From assembly GCA_040285825.1 (NCBI GenBank), contig JAUPSS010000013.1, positions 434,001 through 498,000 on the forward strand: a DNA stretch of 64,000 nt, read 5' to 3'. A program made the translations under genes and the position numbers. The stretch comes from Eukaryota sp. TZLM1-RC. Its lineage: Eukaryota; Protista; Metamonada: BaSk clade. The notes beneath the pieces are model-generated. The model was not told where the DNA came from. It did no database searches and saw nothing but the letters and a program-made list of their open reading frames with translations. Shown here one piece after another: positions 2,053 to 52,035 of the stretch (within the stretch, counting starts at the first letter, position 1; every line of letters begins with the position of its first letter).

Positions 2053-3807
2053 CTACAAACCAAACTTCAATCCACGGTAAATTAAAGCAGATGTAACACT
2101 AGCGACAGGAAGAGTCAGCAACCAGGAGTAAATAATACCCCTGACCATCTTCCAGTTGATCTGCGTTTTTCTAGCAATTGCCTGGAATAAGTGGTAATAA
2201 ACAATAACAAACTTGCCCAATAACAGAACCAATTAGGATATGAGATGTAGAGATAGGAAGACCCAGAGCACTACCAATCAGGACAGTTGTGGCCGCAGAG
2301 ATCTGAATAACAGCACCATTTAGAGCAGTAATCTTAGTAAGATTCTTGCCAATAGTTTGGATAACCCGTTGTCCCAAAAGAGCGAGACCTATGGTAAGAC
2401 TAACAGCTCCGAGGGCAAGGGCAGCAGGGGGTACTTCAGCTTCTCCATCCACAGAATGGGTGTTGAAGGTTAGCAAGATGGATGCATAAGGTCCGATTGA
2501 ATTGGCTTAAATTAGGAATTATTTCTCAAACAACAACTTACCTCTGTGATAAACGGGTAAAAAACTGTTACATACATGTCATTGGACCCATGAGCTGTGG
2601 CTAAGAATGCACAAGATAACACCATCAGGGGAGAGAACAAGCGATCTGCCCCCTTCCTTTGTAGCTTCTTGTACAGATTCTTCTGGAGTTCTTCATCAAC
2701 GGGTTCTGCATCTACGGTATTAGTGTCTTCTTCACGTTGATCATCAACTTCCTTTTCCTCTCCACTTACATCTACATCTTCCATGGGAGGAAGCGACAAA
2801 CGTCTGGGAATAACACCTACATCTTCCTCACTCTCTTTTTCTGCTTCTACCTCCACAACAACATCGTCATTCGACACCTCATCTATCTCTGGAGCTACTT
2901 TGATGGCGGACATGTCCATTGAGACATTGGATCGAATCATATCGATACTCAGCAGCGAGCGATGCTTATTGATAATCTCCTCTGGAATGGTGGTTCTCAT
3001 GCGAGGACGGAAGAAAAACATATGAACAATGTATGCAATCAATCCGACTACTAGTGATATTAGCACAGACTCTAGCATCGTTAAATCCACAATGTTGTCT
3101 AATCCCTTGCTGACAAAGAAGAGAGAAAAGATGAACAGCGAAGTGCCAAAGAAGAATGGCATTACCTTTATGGTTTTTGCTATGGGGTTTTCAGTATCAA
3201 AACATAACTTTGTGGTAATCTTGAAGAGAATAAATGCAATCAGTCCACCTAGGCAAGGAGAAATCACCCAACTAGCAGCTATTTGACCTACACTAGCCCA
3301 TACCACGCTACTCCACCCTTGTGAGATGATGGCGAACCCTACGACGGCTCCGACGATGGAATGTGTGGTTGAGACCGGAAGAGAGAACAGAGTAGCAGTG
3401 ATGAGCCAGATAAACCCTGAGGCCATCGCAGAAAACATTCCTGCCATGAAATCAATAGGCACGGAAAAGTATTTAACGTCGGTAATGCCTGAAGAGACAG
3501 TGGAAACAACGTTTGAACCAAGGAAGAAGGCACCGAGAAACTCAAAGACGAAGGCGAGAACCTGTGGTTAATAAAAGTATTACGTACGATTCCTTGCTTC
3601 ATTGTTATCACACCCGATCCTATACTTGTTCCAACACTATTAGCAACATCATTGGCACCGATAGCGGCTGTGATAAAGGAAGAAAAGAGGAAAAATACCA
3701 GAAAATAGAGCGCAAACAAGTGTACCAACTACAACGAAGACATTACCAGTGAAAAGGGTAGATGAGAGGCCATTGACACACTCGTCGATGGGAATGAGAG
3801 ATGGCAT
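2053..3807 (-). CDS. PiT/PHO4-family inorganic phosphate transporter (5 introns, one 2-nt microexon)
   Basis: Two PiT signatures, GANDVAN and (spliced) HGSNDIAN, plus LPVSTTHSIVG and LPISTSH. Introns at 3668-3698, 3562-3587, 2544-2575, 2506-2541 and 2182-2212 restore a single frame. Confidence 0.93.
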
Positions 3808-10086: not shown

Positions 10087-10425
10087 TCTTACAGATAATG
10101 TCTAGAACAAGGGTGTAAGCGGTCGCTGACCAATGTTGAATGACTTTAAATGAGAAATATTGAAATTGTGTTTTGATGTCTTGTATTAAACTTGCTACAG
10201 ACACTCCCCCTCCCACTATCCCTATTTTGCTTCTCCCCGATCCAAGGTGGCATAGATGGATTCATAAGATTTAAACAAATTTGGATAATATCAGGGGTAA
10301 TGGCATAATGTTCTCTGAGTAAAACTCAATAGGGAAATAAAGAACATATTCAAAGGGAAATAACAAGGTAATTCAGAGAGGTTAGCAAGAATGAGTTTGT
10401 ATTCGGATGCGTATTTCTTCACTTT

Positions 10426-10590
10426 TGATGATCTGCGGGTGTTATGACGGGACATGACCTTATATGAAAAGTAGAGTAATTTATTACAAGGGAATGAGGA
10501 TTTCCCTTAACTTAAGCGCATGGGCGCAATAATACTATAACTATCAATAAACTATCAATAAACTATTATAAATATTATCCAAGGCTAACA
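10426..10590 (-). repeat. 3' LTR (165 bp)
   Basis: Identical to 17737-17901; contains AATAAA and the pol stop codon. Confidence 0.96.
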
Positions 10591-13545
10591 CTGCCCTTTC
10601 TTCTTTTCGAGCGTCGAGGCCTGATAGGAGTTGGATTAACATTATTGTTAATATTATCAGAACGACGTTTACGGCGTGAAGGACGAGAGCGAGTATTAGA
10701 AATAGACTTGGAGAATTCTTTATAGGCAGATGTGTTTTGAACAGTCGAAACCAGCTCAGTGGAAATATAGTTGCCAGGCCATTGGACTTGACAGTAATCA
10801 CCATCCTGACTGAGGACTTTCTGGATCACGTGCTCTTCTGCATCGCCAGCAGCAACCCAGGAGTGATATTCATCATCTACTGGTAAACTGGAATGCCAAG
10901 GTTGGAGGTGCTTCACACTGGCTTTAACAACCATACCAGTACACAGGTTCTTGATGTCAGCTGTGGAGGTAGAGGGTGTGTCAATAACTAAAAATGGTCC
11001 TTTGTAATTACCATGTAACTTAGCAGTGGAAGACGAAGCTCGTTTGACCAATTGGCCAGGAGAGAAAGGGTTGGCTTCGATTTGGGAATCACGAGGAGGA
11101 GCCTTGGAAGCTTGACGGAGCTCTGCTTCCTCCTGTTTCTTCTTCAATCTGGCAAATTTGGATTGAATGTCGTTGATGTAGGTTGACTCAGACGTTGAGC
11201 TTTCAAGGGTCTCTATGATTTTGCCGGGGTCAGCTCTTGGGCTAAAATCTGAACCAAACATGAGCTCGTATGGAGAGTAACCTGTAATCGAACTCTTGGA
11301 TGAGTTGATTAAGAATTGTACATAGGGTATGTACTCTGACCATGCATCGTAGGCGTTAAAATCTACGAGCAGCTTCCTCAAATTCTGCAAAATGTCGCGG
11401 TGACGGCGTTCGACTAAACCGTTGGACTGAGAGAAGTGAGGGACGGACTTTGAGACCTCTATGCCCAAAAACTCACATAGAGCGTCGAAGACAGCTTTTG
11501 AGAACGCAGGACCGTTGTCACTATGGACTATGAACGGAATCCCGAAAATCGGACATACCTTCCATATCAGAGCGTCGGCGGTAAGGTTGGCGTTGAGTTC
11601 TTTGAGAGGGACTATGATAGTGAACCTCGTGAAGCTATCCACAAATACAAAAATGTATCTGTGGCCGTCATGATCTTCTGGAAGAGGACCAATGACGTCG
11701 ACATTAACTCTTGCGAATGGTCTGTCAGCCCACAAGGAACCAGTTGTAGGGACATGCAGTTTGGGGACTGCTGCTGTCTTCTGACAGGAGGGGCATTCTT
11801 GGACGTGCTTCGTCATGTCTGAAAGCATGTTAGGCCACCAGTAGTCGCTGTTCTTGAGTCTGAGGAGACTTTCTGCTTTACTGGGGTGGCCACCTTGCGA
11901 GAGTCCATGTAGAAGGTTAAGCATATCCTTAACCAGTGATTGAGGAATCACGATCTTGTGCTCTGGAGTCAGATAAAGATCTAGACGACTATCCAAAGTA
12001 CAGTTGTTAAACGAGGTGTCCTGGTTAGCGAGGGCTCGCTTTTGTTCGGACCTGATCTTGCAGAGCCATGGCTCGAAGAGTGGAAGGTCATTGGAGCATT
12101 TATCTTGAAGGATAAGCACCTTCTCGAATGTATGGAGATCTTCAACGAAGCATCTCTCTGACTCAGTTTCATCAATCCTGTGTGTGTAGTAGATAGGGTG
12201 AAACTCTTGGTCGTTGGAATGGACCAGATGGTTGATGGTATGATTGTCTTGGGGCGGTACTATCCTAGATAGCATGTCTGCCCAATGGTTCTCTTCCCCT
12301 TTTGTATGAACGATGTCGAATAGGAACTCAGAAAAGATGGGAAGCCACCTTCTGACTATTCTGTTTTTGTTCGGAGCGGTAAGCATGTAAGTAAGGTTTT
12401 GGTGATCTGTGAAAATGATCAGACGCCTTCCTTTGAGGTAGTTCTCGAAGCCACTTTCGGTAAGCATGAGAAGGATGGCATAAAGCTCTTTCTGTACCGT
12501 GGGCCAGTTCTGCTGGGAGTTAGTCAACAATCTGCTGAAGAAGCTGATTGGTCTACATTTCCTATTGAGTAAGGAAGTACCAGGGTCCTTAGTGGGTTCT
12601 ATTTGTTCCCAAATCACGCCGCCAACTGCTATATCAGAGGCATCGCAACTAATTAGTACTTGGTTATCCACCGGAGGTAAGTTTAGAGGCATATGTTCCG
12701 CGATCAGGCGTTTGATTTCGGCTAAATGGTAGTCGTGAGTGTCTTTCCACTGCAGGCGACGTGGTTTGCCGTGTGTTAATTTGATGATCGGGGCAACATG
12801 CTTGGTTACCTGGGGAAGCCATTCCCTAATGAAGTTGACTGAGCCGATAAGGCTACGGGCGTCTTTCACAGTCTTAGGTCTGGGAAGATTCAGTAAAGAC
12901 TCTGTGCGTGTAGGATCAATGGTCCTGGTTTTGTGTTGGAATCTGCTACCAAGGATCTTTATTGGGTGTCTAGAGGACACAAAATGGCACTTGGGCAGTC
13001 CAAGGCTAACTCTACGGGTTCGAGCTTTCTCGAGGACACGTCTTAGACGTCCGAGGAACTCGTTGAAAGTTCTACCTACTATAATGATGTCATCTATATA
13101 GATGAATACACAGTCTCCGGAGAAGATGTCTGCCATAACGTTCTCGAAAACTGCAGGAACGTTCTTGAGGCCGAAAGCAGCACGTTTAAACATGATACTT
13201 TTGCCAGGGATGCTTAAGGCAGTCTTCTCCCAGTCCTTTTCTGCAATCTTTAGTTGCCAAAAGGCTTTGGGGAGGTCAAGGGTACCGATGAAATTGGCTT
13301 CCGAAAGGAAGACTAGCACATCGGATATTCTGGGGAGATTAGGTTCAACGGGAATAGTGTTGGCGTTGACTCCGTCCTTGCCGCTGTAATCACCAGTAAG
13401 GCGAGGCTTACGATGATCAGGGTATACCACAAGACATACTGGAGAGCTGAACTCATGGTTCGATGGTACAGCAAATCCAGACTCGACGAGTTCATCGAAG
13501 ATCTGTTCGGCGACTTTCTGCTTCTCGGGGTTTAACCTACGAGGG
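10575..13545 (-). CDS. pol: Pol: reverse transcriptase, RNase H, integrase, GPF motif, chromodomain-like tail
   Basis: LDLPKAFWQ, FGLKN, YIDD, CDASD, TDH, H..H..C..C zinc finger, DVIGP/SDNG/VER, YKGPF, EHVIQKVL..CQVQW. The frame extends upstream to PRRLNPEKQ near 13545, where one missing C separates it from gag-PR. Confidence 0.95.
10591..10607 (-). promoter_or_regulatory. Polypurine tract
   Basis: AAAAGAAGAAAGGGCAG lies immediately before TGTTAG of the 3' LTR. Confidence 0.85.
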
Positions 13546-15724
13546 GTCGTCTGACTCGAATACTTTCATCATGAAAGTTGATCTCCATTGGAGGACAGTC
13601 AATCCCATCAGCATGCGGCTTAAGGGTGAATGTTTCTTCGAACTCTTTCAAGGTTAGAAGTAAGGTCTTCTTGTCGTTATCACAGTCGAGGTTAATAGTA
13701 CAACCAGAAGACTGTATGTGCTCCAACCAACGTCTGGGGACGTTGACGACATCTGAGACTTGGGAGATTCGATGGTCGAATTCAGCCTCAGGCAGAAGTA
13801 ATGTACGATGTTCCTCATCCATCTTGATGAAGAGGCCTTCATCGTTCAATAAGCCTAGGTGATGCAACAGGTCTCTTCCAATTAGTAACATATTGTTGCC
13901 AGGAATGATGGCCAAGCTATGTTTCACATGAACTAATTGGGTTACACTACCGAGTCTGAAGCTCAGTGTGCCTTCTGCTGATCCTAAAGACTTCGACATG
14001 ATGTTGTTTGCAGACTTAAAGTTTATGCAATGGTTAGTCTTTACCATGTTGCATCTCTCTGCAAAATCAACAGTGATGACTGATATCGAAGCTCCAGAGT
14101 CAATGATCCCTTCTATTTCGCAGTTATTTATTGAAAATTTCAATTTTAAATTTTTGCGTGCGACATCTGAGGTGCGAACCATGAAGATATCGCTGTGGGA
14201 CTCTGAGTCTGGGTTCGAGTCGAACTCATGATTGAAACAGGGTTCATTTGGTGTTTCTATCGTTGTAGCTGTTTTAAAATTCCGGGTAGTCAAAGGATTA
14301 GTTAAACACTTAATCCACTGGTTGGAGACTGAGGTTTGTTTTATGTTTGGTGTTTTACGTGCTGGAGAGCTGTCTTGCTCTATAGTAAACAAGGAACATT
14401 TGTTTGAACGTTGCTTTGATGTATTACCTGTTGGAGAGCTATCTTGCTCTATAGTAAACATTGAATATTTATGGGAACGTTTATTACTACTAGAAGGGCC
14501 CTTGCCTCTTCCTCTACGTCTACCTCTGCCTCTACTACTACTACTACTACCCCTAGCCAAATATGCTCGAACAGCATCTGGGTTGGCATCTCGCCATTGC
14601 TTGGATCGCTGGCAATCAGGGTCGGGACATTCGTTAATAGAGTGGCCTGGAATACCACAGAATCTACAGAGACCAGCATTATCTCTTTCTTTCTTAATTT
14701 GTGACTTGCTCCTTTTGGTGAGTTGAGCAGGGGCGACACTGGAACCCGCAGGCTTAAATTTACCTATTCTTTTCTTGTCCTTTGGGTTTGCTCTAACATA
14801 GTGACCCATATGTTGTTGATAGCTGTCACTGATGTTGGCCCTTTGCTCGTCATAGGATCTTGCTGAACACCAACTCATGTATTCAGCAGCAAGGATGTCG
14901 ACAAATTGTTGTAAAGTATGATGTTGCCAAACATTGGGTATGGACCATACTGTTCTCAGGTTGTCACTGATGGCCTGAATACCAACAGAATGGATCATAT
15001 GGGTTGCAATTTCCCAGTTTTGAATGCGCTGTAGGAAATGTTGACCATACAAGGCACGGTCGCTTGCCCTGACGTCAGAAATGGTGGTACTTCGTGAAAC
15101 TGTTCTCATTAGCCTCACAGTGAAGTCGCCCCAGCGATTCCTAAAGTCCTGAATATTCCAATTCATCTGAACTCTATATAACTGATTCCTCGCCGTTTCT
15201 AAAGTACTATACTGGCTGAGGTGTAAAATTGATTCCCATATTTGCTCCTCATTAATGTTGTCGATAGCTGAGATACTATCAGACATAGACGAAAACCTGC
15301 CTTGAGCTCTCAGAGCGGCCAAGCACTCTGGAGTAACACAGGAGGCAATCCTACGAGGGTCGACTTGAGCAGCAGCTCTGAATCGGTCCCACTCGTGGAG
15401 GGGGTTACCATATCTCTCATCGAGAGGGAGGTTCCGGTTTTCTCTGCTTATGGATTGAGGAGTGGCAGGAGGACGAGAACGTTCCTCAAGTTGCCTTCTT
15501 AATTCAGACACTTCTCTTGCTAGTCTGACTTGAGTAGGATCAGATTCATTGATGTCTCTCTCTTCAATGGTCCTCTCAGTCCTAGCATACAGACTAAATC
15601 TGTCGATGAATTTCAAGATCCTTACTGGGTCAGAGATATCGTTGGCTTCCAGGGTGGGTTTTCTAGGACGACCACCTCTTTGTCTATCTCTATCTCTATC
15701 TTGTGAACTCGCCATAGCTTCCAT
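13532..15724 (-). CDS. gag: Gag-protease region
   Basis: CCHC knuckle CRFCGIPGHSINEC and aspartic protease IIDSGASISVI. In frame with the upstream ORF across one TAA at 15848-15850. Confidence 0.9.
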   Translation of the reverse strand: MEAMASSQDRDRDRQRGGRPRKPTLEANDISDPVRILKFIDRFSLYARTERTIEERDINESDPTQVRLAREVSELRRQLEERSRPPATPQSISRENRNLPLDERYGNPLHEWDRFRAAAQVDPRRIASCVTPECLAALRAQGRFSSMSDSISAIDNINEEQIWESILHLSQYSTLETARNQLYRVQMNWNIQDFRNRWGDFTVRLMRTVSRSTTISDVRASDRALYGQHFLQRIQNWEIATHMIHSVGIQAISDNLRTVWSIPNVWQHHTLQQFVDILAAEYMSWCSARSYDEQRANISDSYQQHMGHYVRANPKDKKRIGKFKPAGSSVAPAQLTKRSKSQIKKERDNAGLCRFCGIPGHSINECPDPDCQRSKQWRDANPDAVRAYLARGSSSSSRGRGRRRGRGKGPSSSNKRSHKYSMFTIEQDSSPTGNTSKQRSNKCSLFTIEQDSSPARKTPNIKQTSVSNQWIKCLTNPLTTRNFKTATTIETPNEPCFNHEFDSNPDSESHSDIFMVRTSDVARKNLKLKFSINNCEIEGIIDSGASISVITVDFAERCNMVKTNHCINFKSANNIMSKSLGSAEGTLSFRLGSVTQLVHVKHSLAIIPGNNMLLIGRDLLHHLGLLNDEGLFIKMDEEHRTLLLPEAEFDHRISQVSDVVNVPRRWLEHIQSSGCTINLDCDNDKKTLLLTLKEFEETFTLKPHADGIDCPPMEINFHDESIRVRRPLVG

Positions 15725-15847
15725 CAGTAGAGTGTTGGAATACTGGGGAGCTATGGGAGTGTTAGAAGGAGTTACTCCTAGGAGCCTAGGGTCCTGAGGA
15801 ACCTGGGAAAAAGTTGATGGATCCTGAGATTGGACAACTACAGGTTG

Positions 15848-17766
15848 TTACATTGTTTCAACAGTGTCAGTAGTTGCTATTGGCTCATCTTGTTGTTGGT
15901 CATCTTGAGGCTCAATGCTCAAAGATGAGAAAACTGTGTCTGTCTCAACTGGGTCAGGCTCAGAAGTTGTCAATTCTACTGGGTCATGATCGCTCGGATA
16001 GTAACTTTGCACATTACCATCGACATTGACCCACAGAAGAGAACTAGAATTGGTGACACCAATGTTCTCCTGTACATTCATCAGGGCATCCCTTAGTGGC
16101 CTATTCCTTCTATGCTCCGGACCAAAATATGACGCGCAATGGTCTGGTCTGCGGTCTTGAAGGTACAATCTTTGGTAGTTCGTAGTGTAAGTGTACCACC
16201 ATCCAGTCCTGAAGTCTCTATTGATATAAATATCAAGAGAGGCATTGTATCCAGGGCTAAACCTGGGGAAAGGACATGGGTTACATCGGTTGAGGAAGAG
16301 ATTCAGCTCATCACCAGCGAAGATCCTCTGTACACCTTCACGAGGAGTTCTGAACCCTCCAACAGTATCCCGTTGAGGATAATTTGGAGGGGGGTCACAA
16401 CGAACCGTAAGATTGTCTACTTCCTCTGTTGGGAAGTAAGGGCCTATTCTTCTGCGTATCCTAAAGCCGTGATCATTAACCACTTCTGGACCCCAAAATA
16501 GGGGTAAAGCAGCAATGAGTTCGTTGGGAGGAATCGATGCAGGATCTCCTTGCATTAACTCAATACCAGCATTGAGAACTAAAGTTTGAGCTTCAGTCCT
16601 CTGCTGAGTAGAGATGAAAGGAGAATCTGATTCCTGGGGCTGGCTTGGAGCTTGATAGGTGTTAGGCTGTGCAGCGCTAAGCACCTGCCAAGCAGCAGGA
16701 ACAGAAGAAACAACGTGACCTTGCTGAGGAGTCTGGCCAGAGGTTGGAGGGACATGAATTACTCCTCTAGTAGGAACTCCCGAAGGAGGAACAGATGGAG
16801 TTGAATGGACTTCTGTAGGAGCTACCGTAGTAGGAGCAGAAGTATCAGGAAGGCCTGCTACAGGAACTTCTTGAGAAGGAGTAGTAGGATTTGGGCTACC
16901 AGCAGGGACTGCAGGAAGAGCTGGTTGTTGCGGAGGGCTGCTTTCCATAGGAACTTCCCTAGAAGGAATGGAAGGAGCTTGTTGTCCTTCCCCGAGAGCT
17001 TCTGTAGAAGAAGTAGAAGGAACTTGTTGTCCTTTCCCAGGAGCTTCTGTAGAAGAAGTGGAAGGAACTTGTTGTCCTTTCCCAGGAGCTTCCGTAGAAG
17101 AAGTGGAAGGAACTTGTTATCCTTCCCAGGAGCTTCCGTAGAAGAAGTGAAAGGAGCAACAGGAGCGCAAACAATAGGTGAAGACGGAGGCTCTACCCTC
17201 TTGAGCTTCAACAGCTCAGATATCTTGTTGCTGGCCGAGTCAGGGTCAGTCTGGTTGATGATATACTTCAGATATTCATCTAAAGTACTGAACTGTTCAG
17301 GATCTAAAAGGGAATCTTCAACCTCTCCTTCAGAACCAGGGGGAGGAGAAAGAGGTACAAAGTTTTCCACATTAGCGGGAGGAACAGGAAGACTGATAGG
17401 TACCACAGGAACGTCATCCGTAGATGGAGTGGAACCTTGACCCGAGGGTAGAGAGGAAGTATCACTTCTCTCGCCACCAGTGGGTTGTTCTGTTTCCAAC
17501 TGAGGAGTTTGGGAGGAAGAACTTGAAACATTGGGTTGTGTAACAGAATCTCCGGAAGGAGGAGTTAACACAGGAGGAGGAGAAGCATTGCTTCCCTCGG
17601 ACCCAGTTGACAAGGGTTGTTCTGGTCCCGACTGAGGAGTTCGGGAGGAAGAACTCGAAGAGTGAGACGTAGGAGGATCAGTCCTAACAGTCTCGGAGTT
17701 GTCATTGGAACCACCCAAAGGTGATCCAATACGTATTGATGATCTGCGGGTGTTATGACGGGACAT
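15848..17766 (-). CDS. N-terminal extension of the retroelement polyprotein: disordered region, 45-bp repeats, unknown ~200-aa domain; broken by a 1-nt indel and TAA
   Basis: ORFs 16858-17766 and 15848-16948 join into one frame (TEAPGKGQQVPSTSS repeats) if one base is restored at ~17123. The ATG lies in the 5' LTR. Confidence 0.7.
16955..17150 (-). repeat. About 4 tandem 45-bp coding repeats (TEAPGKGQQVPSTSS)
   Basis: Repeated unit ACAGAAGCTCCTGGGAAAGGACAACAAGTTCCTTCCACTTCTTCT. Confidence 0.9.
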
Positions 17767-17901
17767 GACCTTATATGAAAAGTAGAGTAATTTATTACAA
17801 GGGAATGAGGATTTCCCTTAACTTAAGCGCATGGGCGCAATAATACTATAACTATCAATAAACTATCAATAAACTATTATAAATATTATCCAAGGCTAAC
17901 A
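17737..17901 (-). repeat. 5' LTR (165 bp)
   Basis: Identical to 10426-10590; contains the ORF1 ATG at 17766. Confidence 0.96.
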
Positions 17902-18365
17902 CTTTATATGAATTATACGCGAAACAAACGTCAATTATTTAATATAATTAATATAAGCTATTATTGAATGAAATACAACACACATGGTGTAACTTTACAA
18001 CAGCATTTGCTATTGACAAACACAAGTTTAAGATGTGGCATCAAAAGCCAACTTCAGTAATGAAATCATCTTGAAAAACGTGGTCTCGTCCATGCTCTAT
18101 TGGATAACATTGTGTGTAGTGGTGTTGAGAAATTTAATGAGGAAAAATCCCAATTATATACAATTATTTTTCATTTTGGAACATGAATTTGGTTCTCCGG
18201 TGATCAGAACAACAAGTCTGTGTCTAGCTCAATGGAAAAAAGAATTCACGATTTTCTGCAATTTGCAAAAGGTCAATGAAAGAATGGTGGAAAATCAGAT
18301 ATATCATATTTATATAAATGTTATACATGGATTAAGGAATCCTACAAATACAGCAAACAATGGTT

Positions 18366-41908: not shown

Positions 41909-42454
41909 AAGTTGATCTGATGGGTATATTGAATGGTATGCTCTTTTTGAAGAAAATTATCTTCAAAAACTTCATATCAGGACTCCACAAAAGTCAAGAG
42001 ACAAACTATGAATAAACAACAATGGCTCTCCATTTGTTTGACACATTGAATAATGGACATGTATTGGATTCTTAGATCCATTTTTGATTTTGCTAAATCT
42101 CAAATCTATTGCTGGGGAAATGACTTCCATTGTCGCAATGATTTTTAGACTTTTCTACTTGAAGTTCTATTTGAAAGTGATTATCACCAAAAAGTATCAC
42201 ATTCTTTTATTTTTTTTATCCTGCATCCAAAACATGTGCGTGCGATGGGTGCGATATTGATGTGTTTTTGTATTAATTGTTTTGATGGTTTTGAAGATAT
42301 TGAAATATTAGTCTAGTGTTTTTCCTAGAATTGATTCAACAATAACAAAAACCTTTACACATGTATGCATTTATTTACTCATAATTTCTACAATATCTTT
42401 GAGTAATTTTTTATTACATTCCGATTAAACTGCTGTCATTTTTATTTCTATACT

Positions 42455-42721
42455 AGTTGTATCCATTTGTATTTTCTCTATTTGGTTTACTTTCTCCAAC
42501 GGCTATACGTTTTTTGGCAGATTTTTGAAATAATTGTAAAGAGAAGAACCAACAGAAACTTCAACAGATTGTTTTGGTAAAATAGAATTGTGTTTTCAAT
42601 TTTCAAGGGGATGTTGAAGATGGTTTCTGATACTTTGCTTTCTCTTGAATCTCACTATGAGAAAGCTGCATCTAGTGTTTTTGTTTTGGGAGAGATGGAT
42701 TATTTAGATGTTGATTCATAA
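42455..42721 (+). mobile_element. 3' fragment of CRE-like family A
   Basis: Matches 51490-51751. Confidence 0.85.
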
Positions 42722-42786
42722 GTTTTCTAATATATATATATATTGTTTTTAAAAACTGGAATATTTATTGAGATAAAAAAACCCAT

Positions 42787-43262
42787 CTAGAATTCAATAT
42801 CATCCAAACAAGCGTCACTATTACTGAACCTACTCACAGCATTACGTTCATATTCTACACCAATAGCTAAAAGTGCCTTTGAAATCATTGTTGGAATAGA
42901 TTTGAAAATGCAAAAAACAATTCTATTTAACCAGAAAGTGGAGTATATTGTCTTACCAGACCTATTCAGTAACACTTTTTTAAAATTTTCAAAAAAGTGC
43001 AACCCTGAAGGTCCAATATTGCCAAAAAGAGAAATTGCCAACGGCACAAACTGATATTTCACATGTTCCACTCTACCTAATTGTGCCAAAGGTTCTTCAA
43101 ATTTTTTTATCTTCTTTTTTTGGCATTAGATAACGGCGAATCAGCGGAATACACTAAACGAGCAGCAGAATTTTTGCAAACATCAACTGAGACAACATCT
43201 ACAACATTGAGAACACCATCGATCCCTGGAGCTACTGAATGTGCCCTTCTTTTATCAAAGGA
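42787..43262 (-). mobile_element. 3' fragment of CRE-like family E, tail-to-tail with the family A fragment
   Basis: D.VSVD, FVPLAISLFGNIG, WLNRIVF. Confidence 0.8.
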
Positions 43263-43591
43263 ATCATAAGTATTTGAAAAAAAATATATTTTTGCTATAA
43301 ATAATTTTAATAATTAATAGCTATAACTCAAATATATTTATATTTCTCCTTAATTTGTTGATTCTCAAACCCTCATGATCACAAACATAATAATGTTATC
43401 GACAAATTTTGGGACAAATCGATGACTTGATGGAACCCAAGAAGAGTATTCAAACCCGTGTTCCAACCCGTGTTCCTGGTGAAATGTAGTTGACTGAAAA
43501 TGCAAAATCACCTCCTGCTTCACTTCTTACATTATAACACCTTGTTCCTTCAATCTATTTCAAGCTCATCAAACACTGTTGATTAACATTC

Positions 43592-44761
43592 ATGGGAAAC
43601 TCTAACCGCAACGTTATCATCTTATTTCTTGAGTTTTTATTTAAGCACAAACTGTCATCTTCCATCAACTCAATCCTGGTTCATCTTGCTTTGCTCGTGG
43701 TTACCGGAATCGCAATAGGTCTTTCGGTTCTCTCGTTTTTGTTTGAGTTAAAACTGATCAATTTTATCGGTTTTTGGTTTTTGCTTTGTTGCTTCATCGT
43801 TATCTATGCTACATGGCCAGCTATCTCTAGCATAGTTTTCCCTGTTGAGTCGCGAACTAGCTTTAAATTTCGTTTGTTCTTCTTCCTGATCGTTGCTGCT
43901 TCTCCTTTCTTTATCGCCATGTTGTCACACTTCTTCCTCTACCTTTCAACATCACCTGTGTCCTTCTTTCTGGACGAACCTCTGGAAGATTCTTATGGAT
44001 ATTGCCTCAACACTCAAGGTTTCTGTCACCTCTACCACGACGTTGATTGGAGCTTCACCTTTATTCCCATATTAAAGTTTCTGCTTATTCTTCTACCAGC
44101 CTTTTACTTTGTAGTTCCAGCGATCATCATGATATTTGGGTGCTTTGGTGCTGGTCTCCTTTGGGTCATTCGCAACGGGGATGACTACTACTCATTTGAT
44201 GGTGAATATTTCAAATATTGGTGCTTTTTGTCGACATTTTGGTCTTGCTATCCAGGTTGTGTGGTGTTTTCTTTATCAATATCGACTTATATTTTAATTA
44301 ATTCAAATGCTGCTCTATTTTCAAGTTATTCAAATAGTTTGCTTCATTTCTTTCTTTTACTCTGTTTGTGTTGCTACAATGTCTGCCGAATTATTACAAT
44401 GAAAAAGCATTGTGATTTTAAGCAGGGTTTAATTAGACTTTGGTATGGATACTTTGTTTTTATTACCTGTATTTCATTGTTTTCGTTGAGTAATTATATT
44501 GGAAGAATCATTATGATTTTTTCCAACCTCATTTTTGGCACTTGTTTAGTTGAATCACTTTGCATCTTCTCTCCTGATGAATATAGTTTGGCCGAAAACT
44601 TGGTGTCATTCATTGTTGCTGGAATTGTCTTTTTAGTGCTTGGATTGGTGATATTAATCTACTCGAAAGTTTTTCAATGTTGTTCACAATTTTGTAAAGA
44701 ATTTAATGAATTTGCAGAAGAAAATAGAGAAACAAAGGAAACTGAAATTGTTTATGCTTGA
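43592..44761 (+). CDS. Multi-pass membrane protein of unknown function
   Basis: 389-aa ORF with about 8-9 hydrophobic segments. Confidence 0.8.
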   Translation: MGNSNRNVIILFLEFLFKHKLSSSINSILVHLALLVVTGIAIGLSVLSFLFELKLINFIGFWFLLCCFIVIYATWPAISSIVFPVESRTSFKFRLFFFLIVAASPFFIAMLSHFFLYLSTSPVSFFLDEPLEDSYGYCLNTQGFCHLYHDVDWSFTFIPILKFLLILLPAFYFVVPAIIMIFGCFGAGLLWVIRNGDDYYSFDGEYFKYWCFLSTFWSCYPGCVVFSLSISTYILINSNAALFSSYSNSLLHFFLLLCLCCYNVCRIITMKKHCDFKQGLIRLWYGYFVFITCISLFSLSNYIGRIIMIFSNLIFGTCLVESLCIFSPDEYSLAENLVSFIVAGIVFLVLGLVILIYSKVFQCCSQFCKEFNEFAEENRETKETEIVYA

Positions 44762-45854
44762 TGGTTTTGGACCAAAAACATTAAGATCAAGACGACTGGC
44801 AAGTCTCCAATGGTCAAGTGAAGGAGCAGGAAAAGAGGGTATTATGAGCCCTGATGACGTTGATGATGATGTGAGGAAACGTGTATGATCACGAAGCCTG
44901 GAACTTTAATTGGTTTGTGGCTAAAAGGAATCCCGTAAAATTCCCAAACATCACCATTGATATCAATAATAAATAGAGATAATATATATATTCAATATAA
45001 TAATTAATAATAGGGGATAATAAAGATAAATAAATAACCCCTTTGAAGTTGAAAGAATCCTGGAAAATAGAGAGACAAAGGAAACTGTTGATGCTTGATG
45101 GTGGTAACTTTGGTTGTTTTTGGTTTTTCCAATGGAATTGTACAAATGTAGGACGTTCTTTTATAATTCGTTTTCATGTGTAATTACTTTATCTGTAAAA
45201 TCGATAAAGACACCTTTTGCTTCAATTTGATGATTTTTCTACATATTTTTTTCATATTTTTTAGGATAAAACAATTGCAATTTGAATCGGTATAAATTAT
45301 ATCGAAAATACTGCTAATGAACCAAAGTTATTATTCCTTCAACAACTTTCGTTTTTGAACTAAAAATTTATTTGGTGCTCACATGATCGTCCCCTTTTCA
45401 TGAGAAACCAAGTCTGGAGGTGCTATATCATCTTCTCTTTTTTCCCAAACAGTTGGCTATTTTGTTTTTAATTTTGTTTAATTTAATTAAATGTAAATAA
45501 ATTGAATTCAGTTTAATATAAAACTGATGACTATCCATCTCAAAATACAAGATGTCATTAATTTCAGCTTATCAGAAATAATAAATAAACCTGCCTTCTG
45601 TGGGGGGGTTCCACAATTGAAGATACCAAGTTTGATGACGAATAGCATCCAAATGAGAGGAGGAACGTTGATGTGTGAACCATCAGCAGGTGACTACGCA
45701 AAGTTCATTTGTATCTGCATTCAAGGAAGAAATGATAAATATTGACTCACAAAAATGGAAATGGTGTTGTTCTCTGTTATGCAAGAAAATACTAAAGGCG
45801 AGTAATTCATTTTCAGTTTTTTTTGACAAAATTTAATTAATTAATTACCAATAA

Positions 45855-46290
45855 GTTGATCCCTTTGCTTTTGTTTATCGCGATGATGTTTTACCTAGTA
45901 CTAATGGTCATTTAAACAAGGCTGAAGATCGTAAGAGAGATAAATATACTGAGATATTAAATGATTTAAATAAGAATCTTTACTCGAAGTTTTCGTTTGT
46001 TCCTTTTGCCTTTTCGATTTTTGGCAACATTGGACAATCCGCCTTGAATTTCATCAATGATTTTGGTAATTTACGTCGTTCAAGTGGTAAGAATTTTGCA
46101 GGGAATTTACGGAAGAATCGTATCATTTTCGCTTTGTACAGAAGTGTTCCCAAGTACTTGAGTTTAATGATGTCCAAACTTTATAAAGATTCATCAAGAG
46201 TTGGTGTGGAGAATTTAGTTTCTTATGTGTTTTAGTTTGTTTTGTTTTTATTTGATTCTTCGTAGAAAATAAATAAATAAATAAATAATA
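45855..46290 (+). mobile_element. 3' fragment of CRE-like family C with (AATA)n tail
   Basis: Near-identical to 46927-47342. Confidence 0.9.
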
Positions 46291-46294
46291 ATTC

Positions 46295-47342
46295 CTTTAA
46301 ATGAATCACATCCTTTATTAATTTCTCTTGAAAAAATGGTGCAAGAACTACCTGTTGATATTTGGAATAGGAGTTTTCCTTCAAGTTTGCCTGCTGTGCC
46401 TTCGAGATCTTTCACCAACCTTCATCTTGCTGTTGTGAAATTACAGAAGTCTGTTCTTATTGGTTTTGAAGACCTGGATTTTTCTAAACGACTTAGTGTG
46501 ACTAAGATTAATAATCCCGTCTTTGCTGCCTTTTTAGCAGACATTCAGAACTGTACTAGTTTAATATCTCAGCAACCAAGGCCATTTGGTCTTCACTTAA
46601 CAAATGAAGCTTGGAAACAAAACATGCGGTTGAGATTAGGGATGTATCCAAGCGGTCTTTTGGACAATTCTTATTGTATTTGTAACAAGTAACCTACTGC
46701 CAATTTCCGTCATATTGTGAGCTGTAAGAAATTTCTCCAATATAGGTCAGTTCTTCATAATGCCGTTCGTGATGTGACATATGAGATGTTTAAGTGTTAC
46801 AATTTTAGTTGCAAAGTAGAACCTTTGTTGAAGCATTATAGTAATGATAATCTGTTTAATTCACGTCGAGGTGATTTAATTGCTCCTTTTGTGGATTCCT
46901 CTCAAGTTGTTGTTGATTTCACTACAGTTGATCCCTTTGCTTTTGTTTATCGCGATGATGTTTTACTTAATACTAATGGTCATTTAAACAAGGCTGAAGA
47001 TCGTAAGAGAGATAAATATACTGATATATTAAATGATTTAAATAAGAACCTTTATTCGAAGTTTTCGTTTGTTCCTTTTGCCTTTTCGATTTTAGGCAAC
47101 ATTGGACAATCCGCCTTGAATTTCATCAAAGATTTTGGTAATTTATGTCGTTCAAGTGGTATGAATTTTGCAGGGAATTTATGGAAGAATCGTATCATTT
47201 TCGCTTTGTACAGAAGTGTTCCCAAGTACTTGAGTTTAATGATGTCCAAACTTTATAAGGATTCATCAAGAGTTGGCGTGGAGAATTTAGTTTCTTATGT
47301 GTTTTAGTTTGTTTTGTTTTTATTTGATTCTTCGTAGAAAAT
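46295..47342 (+). mobile_element. 5'-truncated CRE-like family C (Zn finger + RLE)
   Basis: C.C...H..SC, HNAVRD, EP, RRGD..VVDFTTVDP, KRDKY, FVPFAFS. Confidence 0.9.
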
Positions 47343-47728
47343 AGTAAAAACTCAAAAAGTATACAATAAATATAATAAAATTGTATTAAAACAAAATTGA
47401 TAAATCAACCCAACTTATTGACGTCCCTATATGCTACTTTAAGGTAACTCTAGAGACCACTTTCACGTGAATGATTACATTTACAGGAAAAGGGTATCTC
47501 CATAAGCATTGCGAAGAAATCTGACATGAAAATGAACTGACGGTTTTGCATCAATGAAGTGCGAAAGTATCTGTGCATTGATATGTGTTCTAAGCCTGGG
47601 TTTTGGTGTGCTTCCCATTATGGATTTGAAGACCTTTTCTGTAATGGAGACTTTAACCCTCTTATTTTACATGTGGGTTTTGCCTCCTGGATCATCATAG
47701 CAAAGATGCTTAACAACGGTTCTGTGTA

Positions 47729-48205
47729 GTGGAAGCCAATCCTAGTGGCAGCAATTTCAATGTTTGGAATCTTTTTGGAACTTGTTGTTCACCAAAGTTG
47801 GAACTTTCCACCAAAGTCGATCATATTGTGTTTTTTACTGTAGGTCTGCTTCAGTTGATTGTTTTAACTTGTTTTGCGGTTCTGGTGTGCCTTCTTCTAC
47901 CCTATATGGCCCTCCCAGTTGTCCTTTCAGTGATTGGTCTGTTTATGACAACAGTATTGGCAGAAGTTTGGTATGGCCAACCAAATCACCAAATCAATGA
48001 ACATGTCAAATTCTATGAAGAACTCGATCACAAATTGGATCGATTAATCGAAGCCATTAACGGTAGGCCCCCAAAGCCGTCATTTGAAACAGAGGAACAA
48101 TCATTTATCGAGCCACTCTCTGACCTCTTGGCTCGTCATAATCGAACAGTTCAAGACTTTGTAACAGTGTTTTCTCATTATACTAACAGTAGTTTCTATT
48201 GTTAA
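47729..48205 (+). CDS. Hypothetical 2-TM protein whose 3' end is fold-back duplicated
   Basis: 158-aa ORF (GTG start in the track; true start uncertain). Confidence 0.5.
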   Translation: MEANPSGSNFNVWNLFGTCCSPKLELSTKVDHIVFFTVGLLQLIVLTCFAVLVCLLLPYMALPVVLSVIGLFMTTVLAEVWYGQPNHQINEHVKFYEELDHKLDRLIEAINGRPPKPSFETEEQSFIEPLSDLLARHNRTVQDFVTVFSHYTNSSFYC

Positions 48206-48399
48206 CTATTACTAACTACTGTTAGTATAATGAGAAAACACTGTTACAAAGTCTTGAACTGTTCGATTATGACGAGCCAAGAGGTCAGAGAGTGGCTCGA
48301 TAAATGATGGTTCCTCTGTTTCAAATGACGGCTTTGGGGGCCTACCGTTGATGGCTTCGATTAATCGATCCAATTTGTGATCGAGTTCTTCATAGAATT
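48009..48399. repeat. Long inverted repeat: 186-bp arms, 19-bp spacer
   Basis: 48009-48194 versus 48214-48399, 2 mismatches. Confidence 0.95.
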
Positions 48400-48599
48400 C
48401 TAAACAAGATAAACACCTTCTGAAACTTACCCCAATTCGCAACTTTTACCATCAAGAAATGGAGTCTTCACGGTTTCGTCCAAAATATCTTTTGACAGAA
48501 CTGACTGTGCCTCGAATTCTGAATGAGTTATTATGAATTTAGGAGAAAGTGAAACTTGAAGTTGATTTATTTCTTGTTTTTGACTTAGAAAAACATATG

Positions 48600-51500
48600 C
48601 AGGGGCAATGAAAAAGCAAAAACGATGTTATTACCCTTTCAATATGGAATTAATACCACTGATGAAGTCTCTTCAGCGTTATTTGCTACAGATGTATTAT
48701 TTCGCCAAAATGAATCCAATGTATGTCATTGGATTTTAGTAATGCATTCAATTCACTCAGTCGTTGCAGTATTCACGGTGCTTTGTTGCAATATAAGCCG
48801 GACTTCATGCCGTATTTCCAATCAACATAGAGCACAAATATAATATATAATATAATATATAGCAATTCTAATTTGCTGAAAATAATGTTTCTGACGATCA
48901 ACAGTTAAATGCTTCTAGTGTTCCCTCTTCTTCCCCTTCTGAAAACAGTAATTTTTGTTGTCCATTTTGCAAAAAAGATGTTGCAGATTCACGAAATGAT
49001 CGAAAACTTCTGTTTTGTACGAATTGTAAAGCCGTTGATACCGTAAGACCCCCGATCCGGATCCCAGTAGAAATAAGTCCCGCCAGCACAATCCCCTTCT
49101 CAATGGAAATGAGAAATTTTTCTTCTGAATTGAAAAATAATAAGTGGAATATTTCATCCTTCTGGAAATATTTTGCTAGAAAAACAAAAATTGTTTTAAG
49201 AAAAAATTTGGAAACAGAAAAATTGTAAAATCAAAAATTTGCCGAAAATTGTGCTTACGTGGTCGTTATGGTGCCGCAAAGCAGTCTTTGTTTTCCTCTT
49301 CTTTGGCTGATGCAAACTCTGATACCCTTGAAAAACTTCAAAAGTTGCATCCTCAAGAAAATTTCAAGTGCAGCAAGCCTGATGTGTGTCCTTTTTGGAT
49401 TGAAAATCCTATTACTGCAATTGAAGTTCTTAAAGCTATTCAAAAATTACCTAAGGGGAAAGCAGCAGGCCCAACTGGAATTTCTTTCGATCTCTTAAAA
49501 ATAGCGTGTTCCAGTGCTCCCTAAATTGCTGATGATCTAGCCCACTATTTTCAACAATTAATTGTTTTGAAAATTAATCCTCCATTTGAATTACTCGCAG
49601 CACGTCTGATTGCTTTAGTAAAGCCTGGAAACGGAATAAAACCTGATGGAATACGCCCAATTGCTGTTGGTGAATCTCTTTCTCGTCTGCTGGCATCAAT
49701 TGTCTTCGATCGTGTCAAAGACAAAGCTTCTACATTTTTGAATCCTCATCAATTTGGAATCAAAACAATTGATGGTGCTTCTGTTGCTGCTATTGCCTCT
49801 GATACCTTTTTTAATGCAGAGGAAAATAATTTTATTTTTAATCTCGACTTTAAAAATGCTTTTAATTCTGTAAAGCGAGAAGCAATTTTTGAAGTTATTA
49901 AATCTGATTTTCCTGAGCTATTGAGTTTTTTCTACCATTTTTATGGTAAAGAATCAGATTTAATTTTTAATTCATTTGCTCTTAAATCATCTTCTGGAGT
50001 GAAGCAGGGAGATCCTTTAGGCCCATTATTGTTTTGTTTAGCTATTCACAAAACTTTAAATATCATTAAGCAAAAATACCCTTCTATAAAAATAGTTGCT
50101 TATATGGATGATATATCCTTGATTGGTTCATTTGATTTACTAGAATTGGTTGCTCAAGAAATTGCCGATTCATATGAAAATATTGGGCTTCATCTTAATG
50201 CCAGCAAATGCCTTCTGATTGGCTCTTCTGCTCAAGACCTCGTGATAAACGATTCTATTGTCCCTTTTACTAATTATAGTAGTGATGCTTTTAACTTCCT
50301 TGGTTGTTGGTTAGGAAATGTGCCTCAAATTCAGAATAAATTGCAAGTTATTTTGGAAAAAATGAAAATTGAACATGATTCAATTTCTTCTTTAGATATA
50401 GAAAAGCATATTAAATTTTTCATGCTTAAAATTTGCTACACTGGGAGAATAACCCACATTTTGAGATCTTGTGCTCCTTCCATAGCATTAGATTTTTGTC
50501 GTTCTTTTAATTCATTGAGAACAGAATTTTTTGCTGATTTATTGGATGTAGAACCAGGAATCTTGAAAAACCATTTATTTTCTTCAGCAAATTTGGGGGG
50601 TATTGGATTTACTAAATCTTCAATTTTGTGTCAATCAGCATTCTTGGGTGGTGGCAAAAATTTTATTTATGAATTTTCTCGTAGATTTCCTGATGATTAT
50701 CATCTGTTAGTCCCCAATTGTAGTCCCTATTTGTATGAGTTATCTTGTGAACTTGAAAAATTACCACCACAAATTTGGACCAAATGTTTTCCTCAATCAA
50801 TTCAAGAAATTCCAAACCGATCTCTATTTAATTTTCAGTTTTGCTGTAAAAAGCTTCAACAAGAATTGTCAAAGATTTTTGAAAGCTTGGATTTTGATGT
50901 TAGACTTGGCTTGGCCAAGAAACAGAATCCCGCTTTTGCAAATCTTTTACAAGATATGTGTGACAGTACTTCTTCTGCCTTAGTAACAACAATTCCACAA
51001 GTTTATGGTACTCTCTTATCCGATTCTGCTTGGACTCTGAATATGAGATTTCGTTCCTTTATCTGGTCTGATAATTTACCTCATAATTTAATTTGTAAAT
51101 GTTCTCGAGAAATTACAACTACTCATTTGTTAAATTGTAAACATTTTATCACTTTTAGAAGCAAGGTTCATGATGCTGTAAGAGACCAGTTATATTGTAT
51201 GTGTAAATCTCATAGAATTGAATCCTTCTTGGAACCTCTGTTGTCAAATCTGTTTGATGCTGAAAATGATTTTCATAAGAATAATAGAGGTGATGTCATA
51301 TTACCTGGATTAGATGGAAGCTTCATTTTATTGGATGTAATGTCTGTTGATCCTTGTAATGCCTCAAATGAAAGGCTTGTTAATTCTGAAATTCATAATT
51401 CCCTTTCAAATGCTGAAAATTTTAAATTCAAAAAATACAATGACCCGTTGTCCGAACTGGCCAGTCTACAGCATGCAAAATACAATTTGTATCCATTTGT

Positions 51501-52035
51501 ATTTTCCTTTTTCTGGTTCACTTGCACCAACTGCTTTACGTTTTTTGGATGATTTTGAAATGATTGTAAAGAGAAGAACTGGCAGAAAGTTCAACAGATT
51601 GTTTTGGCAAAATAGAATTGTGTTTTCTATTTTTAAGGGGATGTTGAAGATGGTTTCTGATGCTTTGCTTTCTCTTGGATCTCACTATGAGAGAGTTGCA
51701 TCTAGTGTTTTTGTTTTGGGAGAGATGGATTTTTTAGATGTTGATTTATAGGTTTAGAATAAAATTAAATTTAAAAAAAACATATAGCAATTCTAATTTA
51801 CATTTTGGTAATTGAATTTTGAGTTCATCAAGTTGTGTAAAGCAAGGATTTCGTTAGGACCTCTTTTGTTTTGTTTGTCCATTCATCCTATTTTATTACA
51901 AATTCAAGAAATGTTTCCTTCACTAATAATGATTGCCTTTATGGATAATGTTGTTCTTATAGGTGATCCAAATATTGTGAAAATAGCAACTATATGTTTT
52001 GAAGAAATATTTACCAAAGTTGGCCTCTGACTGAA
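48600..52035 (+). mobile_element. Old CRE-like RT remnant split by the family A insertion (pieces 48600-48874 and 51782-52035)
   Basis: Left piece PFQYG..LDFSNAFNS; right piece VKQG..LGPLLFCL..FMDN. Confidence 0.75.
48875..51781 (+). mobile_element. CRE-like non-LTR retrotransposon family A (RT + CCHC + RLE) with 18-bp TSD
   Basis: TSD ATATAGCAATTCTAATTT (48857-48874 and 51782-51799). GIRPIAVGE, HQFG, DFKNAFNS, GVKQGDPLGP, YMDD, GGIG, HDAVRD, RGD..DV. Stop at 49522 and frameshift near 51510. Confidence 0.93.

Follow-up and report, generated by a model that had tools for sequence, protein, structure and literature searches.

The window analysed here, a stretch of 64,000 nucleotides from Eukaryota sp. 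TZLM1-RC (Skoliomonas litria; positions 434,001 to 498,000 of contig JAUPSS010000013.1), carries two Ty3/gypsy retrotransposons on its minus strand, and the subject of this report is the short palindromic site that directly follows the 5' long terminal repeat (LTR) of each. Element 1 is complete. Its 5' LTR (17737-17901; 165 bp, TGTTAG...ATCA, with boundaries set by an AAAG duplication) and its 3' LTR (10426-10590) are 100% identical by self-alignment, and the two copies of the AAAG target-site duplication lie at 17902-17905 (upstream) and 10422-10425 (downstream). A polypurine tract followed by CAG adjoins the 3' LTR at 10591-10608. The coding region (10575-17766) begins with a gag start codon at 17764-17766, 30 nt inside the 5' LTR, and consists of four open reading frames (ORFs): two gag parts (16858-17766 and 15848-16948), an ORF with a zinc knuckle and protease (13532-15724), and an ORF with reverse transcriptase (RT), RNase H, and integrase (10575-13430). 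Pfam matches on the window ORFs give the order zinc knuckle, protease, RT, RNase H, integrase; this gypsy domain order, together with the Integrase_H2C2 and RT_RNaseH families, places the element in Ty3/gypsy. The coding region is split over ORFs in different frames despite the identical LTRs, with a 91-nt overlap at 16858-16948, and frameshifting, introns, or long-read assembly errors are possible causes.

Element 2 is represented by its 5' LTR (651-786; 136 bp, TGTTGT...ATCA) and the beginning of its gag (1-665), the remainder of the element lying beyond the window start. Its gag ATG, at 663-665, is 15 nt inside the LTR; the window edge truncates the ORF. That 651-786 is indeed an LTR, as the initial annotation had assumed, is confirmed by its 92.6-93.4% identity to both LTRs of a full-length element (L012) and its 95.6-97% identity to single copies at two further loci (L010 and L011), where the similarity begins exactly at TGTTG, the first bases of the LTR. 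In L011 and L012, tblastn places protease, RT, RNase H, and integrase of this family in gypsy order. Elements 1 and 2 have the LTR termini TGTT...GCATCA in common and are read in the same phase through the site. No similarity was found between the gag of the element 2 family and that of element 1, but the pol sequences are 43-53% identical. The two had been described as unrelated; because of the identity in pol, they are better described as two families of one Ty3/gypsy clade. The families in the window are 92-99% identical to TZLM1-RC proteins.

In element 1 the whole site occupies 17723-17744 and, read on the minus strand from 17744, opens with a 4-nt arm and an AT bulge, continues with CA, an 8-nt palindrome, and TG, and closes with a second 4-nt arm. 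The perfect 12-nt palindrome at its centre (17727-17738) is made up of the final CA of U5, the 8-nt core at +1 to +8 (counting from the first base after the LTR), and TG; the arms form a 4-bp outer helix. The site is translated as S-I-R-I-G. In element 2 the layout is the same with another palindrome: the whole site is at 637-658, with an AT bulge and one G-U pair in the outer helix, and the 12-nt palindrome (CA, 8-nt core, TG) is at 641-652. Both descriptions agree exactly with those given in the initial annotation.

To place these sites in context, three genomes were sampled: TZLM1-RC and the Skoliomonas strains GEM-RC1 and TZLM3-RCL. All three have been published without any transposon analysis (PMC11316075). 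Twelve loci (L001-L012), all from Skoliomonas, were taken around related pol or gag genes, and LTR pairs were defined by self-alignment. The 13 complete elements examined all have polypurine tracts and two LTRs running TG...CA, and in all 13 three bases (CAG, TAG, TAA, or AAG; at 10591-10593 in element 1) lie between the polypurine tract and the TG of the LTR. The LTR ends can be fixed to the base because of the 4-bp target duplications, which match in 11 of the 13; in the tandem array of L007 only the outer LTRs have one, and that of L012 has one mismatch.

A perfect palindrome starts at the first base after the CA of the LTR in 18 of 18 intact junctions from about 14 families in the three genomes, 16 of these junctions being additional to the two in the window. 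The core is 8 nt long in 17 junctions (centre at +4/+5) and 10 nt in L005 (centre at +5/+6), and the symmetry extends 1-3 nt into U5, giving a total of 12-14 nt spanning -1 to -3 through +9 to +11. The background frequency of an 8-nt palindrome starting at a given position is 0.0046 (295 kb), which rules out chance as the origin of a feature present at all 18 junctions. Searched the other way, the window and L001-L006 contain 13 palindromes of the form CA-N8-TG, ten of them at LTR ends (eight at two-LTR elements and two at single, unpaired LTR-like ends). Seven different cores were found: ATACGTAT, GTACGTAC, GTAATTAC, ATAATTAT, ATGATCAT, TTAATTAA, and GTAACGTTAC. The site is also present in two non-autonomous mini elements, both with LTRs and a 4-bp duplication: one of 827 bp on the minus strand at L002:18047-18873, and one of 1793 bp at L008:11988-13780, nested in the element at L008:8609-14833. 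A metagenome scan with the pol alignment for relatives outside Skoliomonas gave no match.

In the L011 copy of the element 2 family, one change breaks the palindrome and no 3' LTR lies within the locus. This copy (L011:10047-10240) and that at L010:17391-18176 share their upstream flank, and because of this common flank the two are taken to have been duplicated with host DNA; the copy with the broken core is probably a decaying host-level duplicate, copied with its surroundings and not by transposition.

The symmetry of the core is retained while its sequence changes. When 15 junctions are aligned without gaps (A1), 98.9% of cells in the six core pairs are paired, compared with 20-53% when the partner is slid; changes on both sides occur in 13 cells of the core, there are no G-U pairs in it, and the covariation score was reached by none of 500 shuffles. 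On a tree of the RNase H region, sister families differ in the core (L004 and L007, L009 and the element 2 family, L005 and L008ii), so at least six symmetric switches of the core must be postulated. The flanking helix varies in the same manner: the last bases of U5 pair with +9 to +14 across a bulge of 1-3 nt, with compensatory changes among families, such as GATC/GATC in element 1 and GACC/GGTC in L001. The suggestion that a covarying structure is under selection at the LTR edge, made initially from two sites, thus holds across seven cores with symmetric double changes.

Eight families have a gag start 15-33 nt upstream of the LTR end, with the site read through in a common phase, and the residues encoded across it vary (IRI, VIT, LIN, VRT) without loss of the symmetry. 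The site is non-coding in L005, L002b, and the L002 mini element, where the ATG is downstream. No intact family lacks the site, be it coding or non-coding, autonomous or miniature, and the site is, on this pattern of substitution, a nucleic-acid feature acting in cis under selection for self-pairing. In the families with a non-coding site, the ATG is immediately preceded by a pyrimidine run that ends in CAG, 15-20 nt downstream of the site (L002:13819-13990 and, on the minus strand, L002:18690-18735); this run resembles a 3' splice site.

The initial annotation described the site as a hairpin. The layout of outer stem, bulge, and palindrome is real, but the monomer fold is marginal: predicted hairpins range from -0.4 to -6.2 kcal/mol, with z of about -1. 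In cofold predictions the homodimer duplex has -12.8 to -27.1 kcal/mol, which is 2-4 times more stable than two hairpins. Because the predicted homodimer is far more stable than the monomer fold, the site is better read as a self-complementary dimer site than as a hairpin. As with a dimer initiation site (DIS), its palindrome is predicted to be able to form a stable homodimer.

The known types of primer site do not account for the junctions. A canonical tRNA-type site has TGG within 0-5 nt of the 5' LTR; here, as the initial annotation had observed for the two window elements, no such site adjoins the LTR, and TGG starts at +9 or +11 or is absent, the three families without it being L003, L005, and L008ii. 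Near-identical copies (L004 and L008i, element 2 and L010) diverge 5-7 nt after TGG, with the 12-mer unchanged. No tRNA gene was found by ARAGORN in the window or in L001-L010 (295 kb scanned). A Tf1-type complement was likewise said to be missing from the LTR, and it is absent in 17 of 17 junctions: the longest match in the LTR to the complement of +1 to +16 is 0-6 nt, no better than in shuffles. No element has a second copy of the core of the kind expected from a Ty3-like bipartite site, the sole extra match being the nested mini element, and no downstream partner of the type found in GalEa elements (CHSeq2) was detected, the best matches having 3-5 mismatches in 10 and being no better than shuffles. 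No separate conserved primer site besides the palindrome was found in the junctions; the palindrome itself abuts U5. What all junctions do have, as in GalEa, is a palindrome that abuts the 5' LTR and takes in its last base or bases. A reading of cores starting with GT as 5' splice sites that leave a free 3'-OH was rejected: GT is not the start of four of the seven cores, and the 3'-OH would be placed at -1, not paired at +1.

These results suggest trans self-priming as the best, though tentative, reading of the site. The border between U5 and the internal region is set by the start of minus-strand synthesis, give or take a few bases trimmed by integrase, so that the 3' end of the primer has to be paired at or just after +1. 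Because the base adjoining U5 starts a palindrome in all 18 intact junctions, the primer would have the element's own sequence; a host RNA would need a matching palindromic end for each family. The site would then be a primer-binding site turned self-complementary, with two element RNAs pairing and priming each other in trans, a proposal whose likelihood is put at slightly below even.

As envisaged, two genomic RNAs would pair through the site as a 12-14-bp duplex, and one of them would be cut at the 3' edge of the perfect palindrome, between +8 and +11. The cut would probably be made by the element's own RNase H, by analogy with Tf1, whose self-primer is 11 nt long. The new 3'-OH, paired to the partner RNA, would start minus-strand DNA synthesis into U5 with no need for a tRNA. 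Copying of the primer would regenerate the same sequence, the site being its own complement, and integrase would then set the LTR end at CA. Several features of the junctions would follow from such a scheme. A cut anywhere from +8 to +11 would give the same DNA. Symmetric double changes would arise easily, and, because copying of the primer would regenerate its sequence, only the 12-14-nt core would have to be in perfect Watson-Crick pairing, with bulges and G-U pairs tolerated in the outer helix. There is precedent for two of the parts. The RNase H of Tf1 cuts an RNA duplex to make the self-primer (references in PMC4600332), and in Ty3 the initiation complexes form dimers by way of a 12-nt palindrome located in the primer tRNA (PMC5371799).

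Several points weigh against trans self-priming. Such a model has to say how plus-strand synthesis would come to a halt on an unmodified RNA primer, and which of the RNAs remains intact as template. In retroviruses and in Ty1, palindromes close to primer sites have no role other than dimerisation. Finally, in 14 of 17 junctions the core is followed at +9 or +11 by TGG or TGTGG, which could be a short tRNA site if integrase trims 8-10 nt.

In the main rival, the palindrome is a dimer-linkage site only, a tRNA primes at the following TGG, the intervening 8-10 nt are copied into the cDNA end, and integrase trims at CA. Trimming of this kind is not without parallel, as the integrase of Tf1 must reportedly remove primer-site sequence from cDNA ends, to go by the title of a 2006 paper by Atwood-Moore (listed in PMC11042837). 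The recurrence of TGGCC(C/T) in several families would fit a tRNA site, and both the arrangement of stem, bulge, stem, and palindrome and the stability of the predicted dimer resemble DIS hairpins. However, TGG is absent in the three families named above, and where it is present, pairing with C's at the end of U5 accounts for its G's. Beyond 5-6 nt, what follows TGG differs even in near-identical copies, unlike a site rewritten from a tRNA in each cycle, and TGGCCCT would need a tRNA starting with CCU, which is unusual. Nor does a dimer site require a spacer of 8-10 nt that is always symmetric and always starts at +1. A pure dimer-linkage site with a short tRNA site is for these reasons thought unlikely, at about one chance in a handful.

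Self-priming might also take place in cis, by fold-back: an RNA cut at +10 or +11 would fold into a 4-bp stem with a 4-nt loop and the outer helix, and prime its own U5. The same hairpin is predicted in most families, the outer helix covaries, and the symmetry of the site would make the product identical to that of priming in trans. The weak predicted energies given above argue against it, as does the loop, whose four bases would be free to vary in a hairpin yet stay symmetric; moreover, the cut RNA would lose its own 5' part as template. Fold-back is therefore held to be improbable. The same low standing is given to a structural signal with some other role, such as packaging, control of gag translation a short way past the AUG, or DNA binding by a dimeric protein, with priming by something else. 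Palindromes are typical of the sites of dimeric proteins, and the gag AUG precedes the site by 15-33 nt in eight families. But the site is kept where the AUG is downstream (L005, L002b, and the L002 mini element), every family has it beginning at the first base that follows the LTR, and the core varies freely provided that it is symmetric, which indicates base pairing and not recognition by a protein; a signal of this sort would also leave priming unexplained. A host RNA complementary to +1 onwards, such as a tRNA fragment as for copia and Ty5, has precedent in half-tRNA priming (PMC5371799) but is very improbable, since seven different host RNAs would be needed, each ending in a perfect palindrome, and sister families use different cores.

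The initial annotation put the site forward as a candidate for a new priming system, and in this it was only partly right, as a palindrome at the same place has been known since 2017 from the fungal GalEa elements, which belong to copia (PMC5445492). Their Conserved Hairpin Site (CHS) is a 9-nt sequence after the 5' LTR that forms a palindrome once the final LTR base is counted; the differences among variants fall at positions that pair, and it was proposed as a replacement of the primer site, with the mechanism left unexplained (PMC5445492). Like the Skoliomonas site, the CHS directly follows the 5' LTR and is accompanied neither by a tRNA-type site nor by a Tf1-type complement (PMC5445492). 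The differences are nevertheless considerable. GalEa elements are copia elements of fungi with a 5-bp duplication, whereas those of Skoliomonas are gypsy elements of a metamonad with a 4-bp duplication; the CHS has two main variants, and the Skoliomonas site seven cores. The CHS needs CHSeq2, 12-41 nt downstream, with a fixed A/A mismatch, while Skoliomonas has no such partner and the flanks of its site pair with the U5 end itself. A literature search found no palindromic or self-complementary primer-binding site under such names, the GalEa paper having surfaced separately, and among later papers citing the CHS a single one was found, on miniature retrotransposons with terminal repeats (TRIMs) of bivalves. 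The Skoliomonas site is of a similar kind to the published CHS, but it belongs to another superfamily and another eukaryotic supergroup and shows far more natural variation.

Other systems share some of its properties. Tf1/sushi-type elements (Tf1, Tf2, Tj1, and Maggy, among others) resemble the proposed model in being independent of tRNA and in taking the primer from their own RNA through a duplex cut by RNase H, and a U5 helix is needed (PMC4600332). The Tf1 primer site is short, at 11 nt. It is complementary to the first transcript bases in the LTR and is not palindromic, whereas the Skoliomonas site has no such complement and, unlike that of Tf1, would pair with a second RNA or with itself. 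The DIS of retroviruses and the PAL sequences of Ty1 are likewise short palindromes of the 5' region on a bulged stem, forming kissing or extended duplex dimers (PMC5454406), and PAL lies inside the gag coding sequence (PMC5454406), as does the Skoliomonas site in families where gag reads through it. These palindromes come on top of a tRNA primer site and have no fixed place at the U5 edge, while that of Skoliomonas occupies the position of the primer site. Ty3, also of gypsy type, has a very short site adjoining U5 and couples priming with dimerisation through a 12-nt palindrome (PMC5371799); there, however, it is tRNAiMet, the primer, that contributes the palindrome, and the primer site is bipartite, whereas in Skoliomonas the palindrome is in the element RNA and occurs once. 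Skipper from Dictyostelium, another member of the gypsy lineage, has lost the TGG site and has no LTR complement, and novel self-priming was suggested by the authors (PMC5006619). The Skipper site is a polypyrimidine run and not a palindrome.

Minus-strand priming is a defining step of every LTR retroelement and retrovirus, and to our knowledge only two solutions have been demonstrated for LTR retroelements: a host tRNA, whole or half, and self-priming of the Tf1 type. Priming dependent on a genome dimer could be a third way to start reverse transcription, having arisen independently in a metamonad gypsy clade and in the fungal GalEa copia elements; this wider proposition is put forward tentatively, as a possibility with less than an even chance. 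Between them, the seven cores, the roughly 14 families, the mini elements, and the single decayed copy amount to a natural compensatory-mutation experiment, and this variation makes it testable whether priming and genome dimerisation are one interaction. In practical terms, programs for finding LTR elements that require a tRNA site will miss or mis-score elements of this kind.

Other direct-repeat pairs in the window (35933/38531, 42450/51480, and 60603/63300) were considered and rejected as gypsy LTRs, and they are without a palindromic site. The region at 42450-51755, in which direct repeats of 277 bp and 89.5% identity surround a region with an ORF (49567-51552) matching RVT_1 only, is probably a relic of a non-LTR retrotransposon and not of a gypsy element. 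At L007:486-12601 a tandem array consists of LTR, internal region, LTR, internal region, and LTR, the three LTRs being 99-100% identical. The element at L005:9882-12743 has two identical LTRs of 92 bp and the duplication AGGT in a length of only 2.86 kb; its single ORF contains RT, RNase H, and integrase, with no gag or protease seen. With only 31% pol identity to element 1, it nonetheless has the 10-nt palindrome at +1. The same 10 nt occur in a different setting in L009, where an 18-nt perfect palindrome (975-992, 2007-2024, and 3037-3054) recurs in tandem units with a period of 1031 bp, its central 10 nt being the L005 core. Each unit contains an ORF for a hAT dimerisation domain on the minus strand, and the 18-nt palindrome may represent the abutting 9-bp terminal inverted repeats of a hAT derivative.

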